A stretch of DNA of 64,000 bases from Anthoceros angustus (Eukaryota; Plantae; Anthocerotophyta): the NCBI GenBank assembly GCA_010909165.1, contig MU008189.1:248001-312000 (forward strand), in the 5' to 3' direction. A program made the position numbers and the translations under genes. The notes beneath the pieces were generated by a model, which was not told the DNA's origin, ran no database searches, and worked only from the letters and a program-made list of their open reading frames with translations. Positions 31,713 to 44,409 of the stretch are shown piece after piece; the first letter of the stretch is position 1; every line of letters begins with the position of its first letter.

Positions 31713-32629
31713 CTCAAGCGGCCTTTACCATCTTTAAGCATACCCCTCCAAGGACATGACACAAAATTGTATCTTTTACAAGTCGTCTTTCTCGTTGGCC
31801 ATCAGGCATTTCTCCATCTTGTCTAACCATTTGTACACCCTTGAACATCTTTGGCAGCCCCATCAAAGGTAAGCAAATTTTGATTGCTGATGCTTTAAGC
31901 AAGAGACGCTGCAGCAACATGATGTTGAAGTTAGAATCAAATCTATAGAGAGAAGTGCGGCACAAGTTACCTGAAGATGCCACTTTGAGCAAAATCTTGT
32001 AGAGGCTAGAAGACAGTCTCTGAACTGATAGGCCAACGTAATTGGGAGATTGCTACAACATCCACCAAGGATGTCTGTTCAAGAAGGGAAGGTTATGCAT
32101 ACTTGAAAGTTGCTCGGCAAACACGATAATATTCATACCGGCGGAATAAACAGGAAGCGGCTTTTGCAATGAATAAACTGGAAACCGGGAACATGGGAGC
32201 AAGCGCTGATCGCCATTTTCCAAAAAATGCTTCAAAATTACGGTTGCTTTGTGTGCGAGGCGGGATAATGTCATGACATAGGCTGGAAAGGATATACAAC
32301 CTCGATGGGCACACATTTGCCTTGAAATAATGCCCATACATGACTTTTTGGTGGCGTGAAGAGGGCACGAGAGGCCTCTTGCTATTCATTCGATCGTAAA
32401 GGGTATATGATTTTGGAAAAACCGTTTTAATGAGGGAGTAATAACTATTGGAGATGACAATGAAAATTCAACATGCAGGTGCAAGTCCCTTTCCATCTTC
32501 CAGAATCAAGACATGCAATTCGTTTCCATGCCTTTGGTGTGTGTTTTGTACTGTCGAGTCTCACTTCATGGATGGGTGCTATCAAAGAAAAACAATCGCA
32601 AGGGAACAAAAGTCTCCGTAAGAGTGAGG

Positions 32630-33660
32630 AGATTGACTTACCTTAGAGAGAACTTTTGGACGCATGGACTCGAGAAATTCCGCCTTGACAAACATCGAAA
32701 CATATGGATATTGAATGCGGGGTATTGTCAATGGGCGGCATGCGCGCCTCCACTATCTATATTTTCTACAAGCAGTAGAAACAAGTGACTTACCTTGGGC
32801 GAACTCGTGGGCGGGGTCCCGAAATGCCGTCCCTTCGACAAAGCGTTGTAACATATGCGGAGTGGTGTATGGGCGGTGTAAGCAAGCGGCGCCGGCATGC
32901 GGCGCCTCCACTGTTACACCTGTTGAAACAAGTGACTTACCTTGGAAAGAACTAGGGACACATGGACCCGCAATGCCGTCCCATCGACAAAGCGTTGAAA
33001 CATATGAGGAGGCATGCGGGCTAGGGTATTGTCGGTGGAGGCCCGGCATGCCGTGCCTCCACTATCTATATTTTCTACAAACGGTAGAAACAAGTGACTT
33101 ACCTTGACAACTCGGACGCATGGTCCCGCGAAATGCCGTCCCTTCGACAAACGTTGTAACATATGCGAGTGAGAGTGTAATGGAGGCGCGCATGCGGCGC
33201 CCACGCTTACACCGCCCTACACTAGAAACAAGTGACTTACCTTGGAAAGAACTAGGGACACATGGACCCGAAATGTCCCATCCGACAAACGTTGAAACAT
33301 ATGAGGAGCGAATGCGGGCTAGGTATTGTCTGGAGGCCCGGCATGCCGCCTCCACTATCTATATTTTCTACAAACGAGAAACAAGTGACTTACCTTGCAC
33401 GAACTCGTGGACGCATGGCCCCGAAATGCCATCCCTTGAAAACGTGTAAACACATGAGGAGTGAGTAGGCGGTGGAGCGGAGGCGCGGCATGCCGCCCAC
33501 GCTTACCGCTACAACGTAGAAACAAGTGACTAACCTTGGAGAACTAGGGAACACATGGACCCGCGCCATCCCATGTGACAAATGTTCAAACATATTAGGA
33601 GTGGAATGCAAGCTAGGGTATTGTCAATGATGGCGCCAGATGCGGCGCCTCCACGGAATT
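32630..33660. repeat. Subterminal tandem array of ~140-160 bp units in an alternating ~300-bp dimer
   Basis: GAAACAAGTGACTTACCTTG recurs near 32780, 32927, 33088, 33226, 33378 and 33520; most units carry GCATGC. Confidence 0.9.
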
Positions 33661-33899
33661 TTGGAAGACAACAGACCACGTAAAAGCATGGACCCGACGC
33701 CTTCATTACATAGCGGCGTAAAAGCGTGCGACCGGTGTTCACCAACCTATCTAGTAGCATCGGAGTATGAAACTCGGAAGCCAACATACGCTAACTCTAT
33801 CGTGAAAACAAAACCCTAAAATCTCTAGTCTTGGGACCGAATTCCTTCTCAACCAAAGGACATCCATCATCCACTTCATGGTCACGTCCTCCTCTCCGG

Positions 33900-40700: not shown

Positions 40701-43600
40701 ACTCCTTCATCCACAGCGCCACCCTTCTACTATACCGGGTGCTATGAGCTATCGACCCGGCCGTTGGATTGTCGGGAGGGCTGGAGGAAAGGCAAGCAGC
40801 GCACGAGGCAGCCGAACCGACACCCAAGTCCGGATCATGGTAATTTGTTGGCGACGAGCTAGTCATTTCCGATACAAGGCCGGGATCCGGAAAGAGGAAG
40901 CAGTCTTGATGCAAGAGGATCGGCGAGCGAGAGAGTTTGGAGCCGAACATGGTAAAATACGGAAGAAAGCAAAGACTACAGAACTATGTCACCGTAGGAG
41001 ACATTCCCACAGTGCACCTTTCAACAGATGAAGAGAGGTTGGAATCTTCCTTCCACGAGGAGGACTACCTCACCCGAATTCGAGATGCAGCATATGCGAA
41101 GAAGGTGGTCCCGGAGACTATGTTGGTAAAGCTGGAGAATCTGCGGCCTGCCTCTTATCTAACCCCGGATGCGCAGATTCGGCGTGTGGATGAAGCGTGG
41201 ACTAATTATCTGGCTCGCGTGATTGGAAAGGGCCGAGTTGAGGAGGGCGTATTGCCCCTTTTGTGCATGATTGATCCCAAGGAGTGTGATGATCTAGAGG
41301 ACTGGTGGAAAAATTCGAGCAAAAGAAATACATCATGGGTGTGTTAGGCGGGAACCACACATTTGCGGCAATGCAACATTTGGCGGACATATCACCGATG
41401 AAAGAGCGTTTCAAATGGATAGAGGCACATGTGTATTGTGGGTGACCACCACGAAATGAGGGTTTTGGCGGTGATCACAATACAATGTCGACAAGCGGCG
41501 GAAGATGTCGTTCATAGAGCAAGTAAGATATCTCAGAGATGAACTGCTTATAGCCAAGCGGGATGGCGTGCATATGTCCATGAATTGGAAGTTCAACTGT
41601 ATAAGGTATTGGGTCTTATCGAAGATGATGAAGGACGGGAAGATGATGCCTACAAAGCAGAACAAGGTTGACAACGGGCGCACATCTTGTGCATAGCGAA
41701 GTTGGAAGGAAGGGTATGGGAGAATGTGGACAAAATTTTTGCAAAGTGGGAGGCTTGTGACTTGCGGAAGAAACATGTGGCGGGATTGAGCAAAAGAGCA
41801 AAGGCAAGCGGAAAGCGTGGAAGAAACGAAACAAGTTGAGGGTATATTGGTGAAGCCCAAGGAGATGCAGACAAAGCCATGGCGTTGCTTTCAAGGTATT
41901 CTGCGGGGAGGCGGGCAGCAAATGCTTATTAGTGCCAGAAAGTTCTCACGGCCTTATGGATTTGAAGGAATGTCGGATGAAATTATATTGCAAGAAATTG
42001 CATATCATCCAAGTGGCCATGGCGAAGCACTTAGGATGTTCATCTTTTGAGATGGTGAGGCAAGAGTACCCACAACATTCCACCGGCAGTAGTCGCGAGT
42101 TCAGTTTTCGAGGGAAAGGTATGTTATCATACTCTCTTGTTTCTTAGAACTTTATATGGTACTGGGCGGGAGGAGGAGGGAGAGGGCGCCGGCATGCCTC
42201 CTCCTCCTCTGTTGTCCGCTTGGCGCGGCATGTGCAGCGCCGGCATCTGCGCCCGGAGTTGGGTGGGCGGCATGCGCGCCCCCTCACCAATATAGTAGGG
42301 GTTGCCTCGGGGAGGCGGCATGCCGGCGCCAGTCTAGATGCCTCAGGCCCTAAGTGCGGAGGCGCCGGCATCGCGCCTCCCTGCACTAATATTGACAAGC
42401 ATCCTGTTTTGTGCAGCAACAAAAGACATTGAAGTCCTTACCAAGTGCCCGAAAACTTTCAGCAGTTCATTTATGAGGTCAACACTTGGAAGGGCTTGGA
42501 GGATGATGACAGTCGCGAGATAGAGACATAGAAGAGGATTGTTGCAATTCAGTCCCCGATCGGAGAAAAAGTACGATGTCAGTTCATGCTCGAGATGTGC
42601 AGGATATGCGAGGTTTTGTGAGGAAGAGGAGTTACTCTTTGCTTGTGATGGATGTCCACGTGGATTCGAGAAGGGCCCAAAGGATGGAAGGTTTGATATT
42701 TGGCAAGTTGGTAATGTTTTGCATTCCTTCCATGACTTGGTGAATCTGACGATTCGGGATGATCATAATGCATGGTGTGGAAGATTCACATATTGTGCGG
42801 AGCCTATCGGAAGTGGTGCCGGAGGGTGGTCTTGTTTCATTTGTGTGGGACAAGACAAATGTCAACAACGACAAGGGTGGGTTTGATACGGTGGAGTATG
42901 TCCTTTGTCGGGTGAAGAAGAAAAGCTACGAGTTCGTGGCATCATGTTACCTAATGTTTTGCGGGGCACTTTCAATAATGGTCGTCGGTGATTGCCCACC
43001 ATACGATTGTGAAAAAAGGTTTATCATTCACTTGACAAACTTGTTGTCATCCCTACCAGTGACCTTTAGGTTTGATGATGAAGCTTATCAAGACATTCTC
43101 CAAGGAAGGGATGGATATTGGATGCATGTGCGGTGGTGGGTCATCTTTAATGGTGCCTTGTTGTCGGCGAAATTGTATTTCTATCGAGGCGGACAAGAGG
43201 TGTCGAAATTCATTCCAGTGTACATGGATATGAATCTTCTTGGGATGCGGAGGAGGAGGCGACACATGAGCCGCATCGTCGTGGTCCATCTCAATTACAG
43301 GCCAAGGAGGTTTGCGTCGGTGAGAAGGATATTGGGAAGGCTCAAATTGTGCCTCTAGGGTCGAGCGAATGAAAGAAAGGAGGAGACCACAGCCGATGAG
43401 GGAGCAGACACTAGAGGCATATGGCACACCTCGAAGTTGACGGAAGGAAGGCAGCGCCCGGCGATGATGGGCTGACTCTTTCGGAGAGATGAAGAACGTC
43501 GAGAAAGCGTCACCGTAGTTCACGATAGTGAAGCCGGTTTGTGTGCGGTTGAATCTTGAGACCGTGAACTTCCTTAGGTGGCTAGACGTTTTCACTGTTC
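37735..43600 (+). CDS. Transposon accessory gene(s): low-complexity N-terminus (internally duplicated), ParB-like domain, PHD-like fingers, possible amino-methyltransferase-like region; boundaries approximate
   Basis: PLLCMIDP...VLGGNHTFAAMQHL...AHVYCG...HN...KMSFIEQVRYLR; intron 42119-42416; CSRC...ELLFACDGCPRGF and LSEVVPEG/WSCFIC; MVVGDCPPY. Many frameshifts. Confidence 0.55.
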
Positions 43601-44409
43601 TTTGTATGTCGTATGGGCGTTGTCTTTGGAGTGGATGACACGCGGATCTTCTAGTAGCAAGTTGTTACGTATGCGGCCATGAGGCGTTTTGAATACATCG
43701 GCGGGCACTCTACTTATAAGCGAGCATTGCCGCTTGTCCAAGCATCTCGCACCTAGCACCTTCATTGCGGACCCTTTGAGCGAAGGAAATGTCAATCACA
43801 TTGATTGCTTGTAGCGCATGTGCTTCGAAGAGGCGTGTTTGGAGTGAATTAATGGCGTAAAGAAAGTACCAAGCGGCGGCAATTTTTCCATAACCGGCGT
43901 ACATTATTCCGCCGGTATGAATATTATCGTGTTGGCATTGAAGCTTTCCTTGTTGCATGATGCCCATGATGCACCAACAGCGGGACACATGGGATAGACA
44001 AGACATACTAGCATTGAAGGAGCATGTCTGGTGGCAAGGCATGAAGAAACAGTGCATCAAATGTGTGCAGGAGTGCTTGCCTTATGTGCACACCAAGGCA
44101 GTCAGAAGGGCACCAGTAGGCTTGCTTATGCTTTTGGAGGTGCCAGTAGAGAAGTGGTCCAACATGACCTGTGATTTTGTGACATGGCTGCTGAGAACGC
44201 AGAGAGGGCAAAGCATGTCAACAAGAAACGAAGGGATGAGCAGCATGAAGCTGGTGACCTGGTGTGGCTGAGAGTGCGCCCCAACAGGTACTCTAGGCTG
44301 CAAGAAGGTAAGGCCAAGCTCGCTTATAGATATGTCGGTCCATTTGCTGTTAGCAGGAAGGTCTCCACAATATCTTATCAGCTAGACCTACCGTCGCATT
44401 GGAGGATAT

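Follow-up and report, generated by a model that had tools for sequence, protein, structure and literature searches.

Background

Sola transposons are defined by a transposase of the DDD type, a 4-bp target site duplication (TSD), terminal inverted repeats (TIRs) of 11-1124 bp, and total lengths of 2 to >15 kb (PMC10741241, PMC9033089). Sola1-1_Ec32, an element of the brown alga Ectocarpus (Dinatale et al. 2025), has AACCG-CGGTT termini, a 4-bp TSD biased to A at its end, a transposase whose best blastp match is Repbase Sola1-1_PPa, and, on the strand opposite the transposase, an accessory gene that joins a ParB-like part to an N4C/N6A DNA methyltransferase (PMC12477816). Adenine methyltransferases fused to ParB have also been described from chlorophytes and chytrids, together with phage loci that pair ParB with terminase (Iyer et al. 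2016, PMC4738411). Here we describe an 11.8-kb element at positions 32120-43933 of a 64-kb stretch from Anthoceros angustus (assembly GCA_010909165.1, contig MU008189.1, positions 248,001 to 312,000 of the forward strand). We refer to this whole stretch of 64,000 nucleotides as the window and count positions within it. The element carries the remnants of a transposase gene and of a second, passenger gene on opposite strands, and it is probably a copy, structurally complete but no longer coding, of a DNA transposon family in the Sola1 group.

Ends and Insertion Site

The ends of the element are exact. The window contains the TIR, AACACGATAATATTCATACCGGCGGAATAA, at exactly two places, 32120-32149 (plus strand) and 43904-43933 (minus strand); the two 30-bp copies are perfect complements of each other (0 mismatches), and chance predicts zero matches. 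The terminus reads AACACRATAATATT, and the element as a whole runs AACAC...GTGTT. Directly outside the TIRs lie two copies of the TSD, GGCA, at 32116-32119 and 43934-43937. When the element and one copy of GGCA are deleted, the rebuilt empty site reads in a single frame as ...GRLCILESCSALKLSLLHDAHDAPTAGHMG.... In the DNA directly to the right of the insertion, Pfam identifies the latter half of Integrase_H2C2 (E = 2.4e-4) and, after it, SH3_Tf2-1 (E = 4.4e-14). The element interrupts the zinc-binding domain of an old gypsy integrase, which is itself decayed by stops and frameshifts. A first-pass annotation of this DNA had described perfect 30-bp TIRs, an exact GGCA duplication, and an empty site that reads in frame as gypsy, all of which we find as described, and it had taken the perfect ends to suggest a young insertion; they do fit a fairly recent one. 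An uninterrupted paralogous empty site was sought within the window, and none was found.

The target itself has two further features. At 43942-44408 the Integrase_H2C2 remnant almost directly adjoins SH3_Tf2-1 in a host gypsy that is full of stops, and the catalytic core of the integrase appears to have been deleted from between these domains. The flanks are also partly palindromic around the TSD (32105-32119 and 43934-43948; GAAAGTTGCTCGGCA versus the reverse complement GAAAGCTTCAATGCC), a single instance that may reflect a symmetric target preference.

The Transposase Remnant

A transposase pseudogene was traced on the minus strand over 33925-36001 by Pfam, phmmer, tblastn, and profile comparison. 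Its catalytic core occupies 34739-35466. On either side the signal is weak, with traces of the C-terminus at 33925-34214 and of an N-terminal zinc motif, RFSTCSLC, at 35918-36001. The motifs reported in the first-pass annotation (IDGMDQ, LDN..ENKN, and VGHTHD) are all present on this strand between 34986 and 35415: AIDGMDQ within 35197-35415, LDNTCRENKN within 35061-35186, and VGHTHD within 34986-35057. The frame of AIDGMDQ is not that of the other two, and these are themselves separated by an in-frame stop at 35058-35060.

The broken coding pieces were searched separately, each on its own. Two short pieces of the transposase gave weak Pfam matches to DUF7869, and an exhaustive phmmer search with a 73-aa piece recovered 14 relatives (best E = 2.5e-8), one of which is a Ginkgo biloba gene model; word-based protein searches with this piece, and with a 202-aa piece of the passenger gene, returned no matches. 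DUF7869 was the only Pfam family found, at E = 1e-49 to 1e-64, in seven of the eight relatives scanned, and the eighth, the Ginkgo model, had no Pfam match. Both full-length relatives are among the seven, and at E <= 0.01 they match DUF7869 alone and the transposase domain of no other superfamily. A profile built from the DUF7869 relatives maps back onto the window at 35466-34739, its first piece (73 aa) with E = 1.9e-22, and between its breaks the remnant follows the profile consensus almost residue for residue (VFvKIKVGFLLVGHTHD, KKTELPHF, lDNTcRENKN, vDQMFScFS). With a four-sequence full-length profile the N-terminus of the transposase was not mapped, the weak match at RFSTCSLC being all that was found.

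The manually curated transposase of Sola1-1_Ec32 contains MMDGANQ, VDNTVAENKNNYL, and MVGHTHIQIDQIFSCFA (PMC12477816, supplement). Compared by eye, the remnant in the window presents AIDGMDQ, LDNTCRENKNQLL, and VGHTHD.VDQMFSCFS in the same order, and the two proteins have in common the series DG..Q, DN..ENKN, and GHTH..IDQ.FSCF. This series, together with AAC...GTT termini and a 4-bp TSD that ends in A, supports the assignment of the 11.8-kb element to Sola1, the identity that the first-pass annotation had proposed. The 30-bp TIRs fall within the range reported for Sola, and the TSD has the length that the definition demands; since it is not TTAA, piggyBac and Kolobok are ruled out. The earlier argument that a 4-bp, non-TTAA duplication with short TIRs fits Sola is supported, although the accompanying remark that such elements are poorly described in land plants must be tempered, because Sola1 has a plant host on record, the moss Physcomitrella (PMC9033089, PMC10741241).

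The Passenger Gene

A coding remnant on the plus strand, at approximately 41174-43200, stands opposite the minus-strand transposase, in agreement with the divergent two-gene layout of the first-pass annotation; the large second gene claimed there is present, but as broken pieces. From the copy alone, searches of these pieces against Pfam, PHROGs, PDB sequences, and the Atlas gave nothing usable; PHROGs returned a weak ParB-like match (E = 0.07). On L001, a metagenome contig from an uncultured source (European Nucleotide Archive, ENA), a DUF7869 gene faces a homologous passenger gene whose pieces match the plus strand of the element collinearly, with PLLCMIDPKECDDLEDW and VLGGNH among the matches in the ParB-like half, and whose last piece matches N6_N4_Mtase. 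A search with the 288-aa piece of L001 yielded 29 relatives, and a profile of 16 relatives (A1) is collinear with 41174-42144 over six reading-frame pieces, which we assign to the ParB-like N-terminal half. When an AlphaFold model of a relative (pLDDT 66), built on the alignment of these relatives, was compared by Foldseek, the top 16 matches were all ParB/Noc/Spo0J/KorB proteins, with probabilities of up to 0.99 and a best E of 3.6e-3.

The half that resembles an N6/N4 DNA methyltransferase was located by tblastn at 42579-43200. On a second ENA metagenome contig, L004, a ParB-like part is followed by a 381-aa product that scores above the Pfam gathering threshold for N6_N4_Mtase (33 bits versus 26.7). 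This product matches 43039-43200 in tblastn at E = 1.6e-5, and L001 matches the methyltransferase half at E = 0.002. Within 43039-43200 the window copy reads HPYQ*P, with an in-frame stop, where L004 reads HPYQKP, and a motif I remnant, CGGGSS, follows; the motif IV region, near 42650, is placed before motif I. At the motif IV position the copy reads MDVHV, versus ADIPYG in L004 and ADILYG in L001, and it has no intact (D/N/S)PP(Y/F) motif. On the strength of the collinear profile and tblastn matches, the N6_N4_Mtase score of a relative, and the ParB fold predicted for a relative, the second gene is, as judged from sequence and structural modeling, a decayed ParB-like and amino-DNA-methyltransferase gene. 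The motif IV of the intact relatives (L004:1834-2979, L001:3357-3986) is itself not the canonical DPPY, an observation that places the catalytic competence of the whole passenger methyltransferase family in question.

Two candidate features of this gene were rejected. GDCPPYD, near 42990, might be read as motif IV, but it lies outside the collinear methyltransferase alignment, and a frame shift lies between it and the HPYQ*P segment. A putative PHD finger at 42524-42883 has no Pfam PHD match at E <= 1; the frame that holds its cysteine pattern and the frame homologous to the methyltransferase overlap on this DNA, and neither L001 nor L004 has such a motif. In L004 the ParB-methyltransferase gene is followed, after some 3.3 kb, by a 286-aa product (6297-7157 of that contig) ending ...LGFDLGHT...RVLGNSF. 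By eye, this product resembles cytosine-5 DNA methyltransferases in their C-terminal motifs; Pfam gives no match to it at E <= 1.

Coding State of the Copy

The transposase core, of about 230 codons, contains at least five frame switches (near 35305, 35260, 35200, 35150, and 34988) and nonsense codons at 35058-35060 and 34928-34930; among the breaks are nonsense substitutions as well as deletions that do not fall in homopolymers, and no uninterrupted transposase reading frame is present. In the passenger gene we count at least six frame switches and several stops, and its methyltransferase half has further stops and one shift. Breaks in the ParB-like half add no length relative to the continuous open reading frames (ORFs) of the relatives, which identifies them as frameshifts and not introns. 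With both genes riddled with frameshifts and stops, the window copy cannot make either protein.

Public run X1 is the only one that contains part of the stretch, as short contigs with word depths of 20-80 that lie mainly at 33576-35348. One 165-nt contig from this independent run equals 35159-35323 with 0 gaps and one substitution, at a word depth of 68, and spans three frame switches. A frameshifted version therefore exists outside the window assembly, and it looks multi-copy. Minority indel variants in X1 at 34986 and 35245 were considered as repairs of the frame and rejected, since either one would disrupt sequence that agrees with the profile; they represent other decayed copies. Run X2, guessed to be RNA and derived from the same sample as X1, held no content matching the stretch.

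Internal Repeats and GCATGC Palindromes

A subterminal tandem array lies near the left end, at 32736-33625, with a 293-bp period and approximately three copies, and it contains seven GC-rich palindromes centered on GCATGC at 32738-33488. GCATGC, the center of palindromes such as GGAGGCGCGGCATGCC, occurs 18 times in the element, versus about three times expected, and mostly within repeat units; further palindromic sites are found at 38802-40689 and 42192-42318 in the element, and at 44838 and 45216 in a small neighboring element described below. The subterminal palindromes may be sites at which the transposase or the ParB-like protein binds. GCATGC enrichment was looked for in the relatives on contigs L001-L004, which are not enriched, and conservation of cis-acting sites accordingly lacks support. 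One may speculate that the ParB-methyltransferase of land-plant Sola1 elements binds GCATGC arrays as parS-like sites and marks the element with 6mA or 4mC, in which case the window copy would be the fossil of a self-labeling epigenetic system; we consider this idea improbable.

The spacer between the divergent genes is filled with repeats from 37900 to 40700, in units of about 1080 and 625 bp (families D1-D14). Stretches of 274 nt and 300 nt are repeated here at 100% identity (38351-38921, 39430-39703, and 40334-40633), which reflects either internal duplication in the very recent past or an artifact of assembly.

Alternative Explanations

The first-pass annotation had suggested read errors as a source of the frameshifts and had allowed for activity of the element. 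Such a reading, of a young and autonomous element that might still be active, would be in keeping with the perfect TIRs and TSD and with the very good conservation of the residues between breaks, and most of the breaks are indels, the typical error of long reads. Against it stand the two in-frame nonsense codons of the transposase core, and the deletions at approximately 35305 and 34988 do not have the form of a simple slip by one base in a homopolymer. Three of the frame switches recur in the gapless X1 contig, the damage to the passenger gene is just as heavy, down to the MDVHV that stands at its motif IV position, and no RNA run containing the stretch was found. We regard an active element as very unlikely, and neither suggestion survives this comparison. 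A dead copy of a Sola1 element would still be misnamed if its transposase belonged to a separate DUF7869 superfamily that merely resembles Sola1, an error that would leave the anatomy intact. In favor of such a separation, DUF7869 carries no transposon name in Pfam, and the literature searched contains no paper that mentions the domain. Against such a separation, a curated Sola1 transposase with Sola1-1_PPa as its best blastp match has the same ordered motifs, AAC termini, a 4-bp TSD, and an accessory gene, and we give a separate superfamily almost no credence.

The length of the element is a further matter, and one that is compatible with a dead Sola1 copy. The true element might measure about 9-10 kb if part of 37900-40700 were an assembly duplication, as perfectly identical repeats within an otherwise mutated element would suggest. 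Yet repeat arrays are common between divergent genes and near transposon ends, and the data show no sign of misassembly (X1 read coverage ended at 37900, before the repeat block); we hold a shorter element to be possible, if rather doubtful. That the internal repeats could be artifacts is also one of several points that weigh against our interpretation as a whole. The link between DUF7869 and Sola1 is a by-eye comparison of motifs with one published sequence. The library type of X1 is not on record, and X1 may be the sample from which the window was assembled; its contigs cover 15 of the 30 bins examined, and the passenger gene lies outside that coverage. Finally, the mobilization in trans proposed below, and the autonomous master copy that it calls for, are hypotheses drawn from the window copy.

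A Small Neighboring Element

Just to the right of the 11.8-kb element, 44410-45933 is a non-autonomous TIR element of 1,524 bp with termini AACTG.../...GTGTT. Its right end is identical to the TIR of the larger element at 23 of 30 positions, its 4-bp TSD (ATAT/ATGT) has one mismatch, and it splits the same gypsy at the integrase C-terminus, separating ...HWRI from ...FHVSLLK. A blastn comparison of the small element with the large one found no internal similarity. In its related termini and 4-bp duplication, the small element supports the features that we ascribe to the family.

Discussion

The window element resembles Sola1-1_Ec32 in its ordered transposase motifs, its AAC...GTT ends, a 4-bp TSD whose last base is A, the placement of an accessory gene on the strand opposite the transposase, and large size. 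The two differ in length (21.5 kb in Ectocarpus versus 11.8 kb here), in their TIRs (282 bp and imperfect versus 30 bp and perfect), and in host, a brown alga as opposed to a land plant; Sola1-1_Ec32 was scored as autonomous, whereas both genes are broken here, and the report on it is silent as to whether its genes are oriented head to head or tail to tail (PMC12477816). L001 likewise combines a DUF7869 gene with a homolog of the passenger gene, and in L004 a ParB-like part is followed by a product above the N6_N4_Mtase gathering threshold. The genes of L001 (1149-6089) converge tail to tail with 244 bp between them, whereas those of the window (33925-43200) are divergent and about 5 kb apart, and the ORFs of both contigs are intact where those of the window copy are broken. 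The moss element Sola1-1_PPa, whose suffix we take to denote Physcomitrella patens in Repbase usage, was compared by description alone. It is a land-plant Sola1 from a superfamily with a DDD transposase and a 4-bp TSD (PMC10741241, PMC9033089). The family described by Iyer et al. shares with the passenger gene the combination, in eukaryotes, of a ParB-type DNA-binding module and an amino-methyltransferase of prokaryotic derivation; its methyltransferases are of the Dam type (group 2), whereas the passenger matches Pfam N6_N4_Mtase, with motif IV before motif I (PMC4738411).

We suggest that members of this family would carry two divergently transcribed genes, one of them encoding a DDD-type transposase (Pfam DUF7869) that would bind the AAC...GTT inverted ends and excise the element. 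Reinsertion through a staggered 4-bp cut in the target would create the 4-bp duplication, and the window copy would have landed in this way in the zinc-binding domain of the decayed gypsy integrase. Most of the damage would be older than that insertion, the defective copy having been moved in trans by the transposase of another copy. Under neutral decay, an indel density of at least five per approximately 700 bp would go with several percent of substitutions, a level that predicts about four changes in the TIRs and TSDs (68 bp together); none is seen. Because the TIRs and TSDs are unchanged despite this density, and because of the depth of the frameshifted X1 contig, decay before insertion, followed by mobilization in trans, is the most likely history of the window copy. 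Mobilization in trans of copies with pseudogenized transposases has been proposed for the giant families of Ectocarpus (PMC12477816). For the window copy, we infer this mobilization, as we do the catalytic triad, including the assignment of its three aspartates, and any role of the passenger protein.

The two-gene design is already published from Ectocarpus, and Sola1 is already known from a moss. What the window copy adds is a land-plant record for a two-gene design described from algae alone in the literature that we searched; Sola1 transposases are accompanied by a ParB-methyltransferase passenger in hosts that are very distant from one another. For annotation, about 11.8 kb of otherwise unclassified sequence is explained and, with the 1.5-kb neighbor, so is a broken gypsy integrase. 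The value of a dead copy is that of a catalog entry and of a pointer toward an intact member of the family, and such a member could allow a test of whether an amino-methyltransferase borne by a transposon marks the transposon's own DNA.

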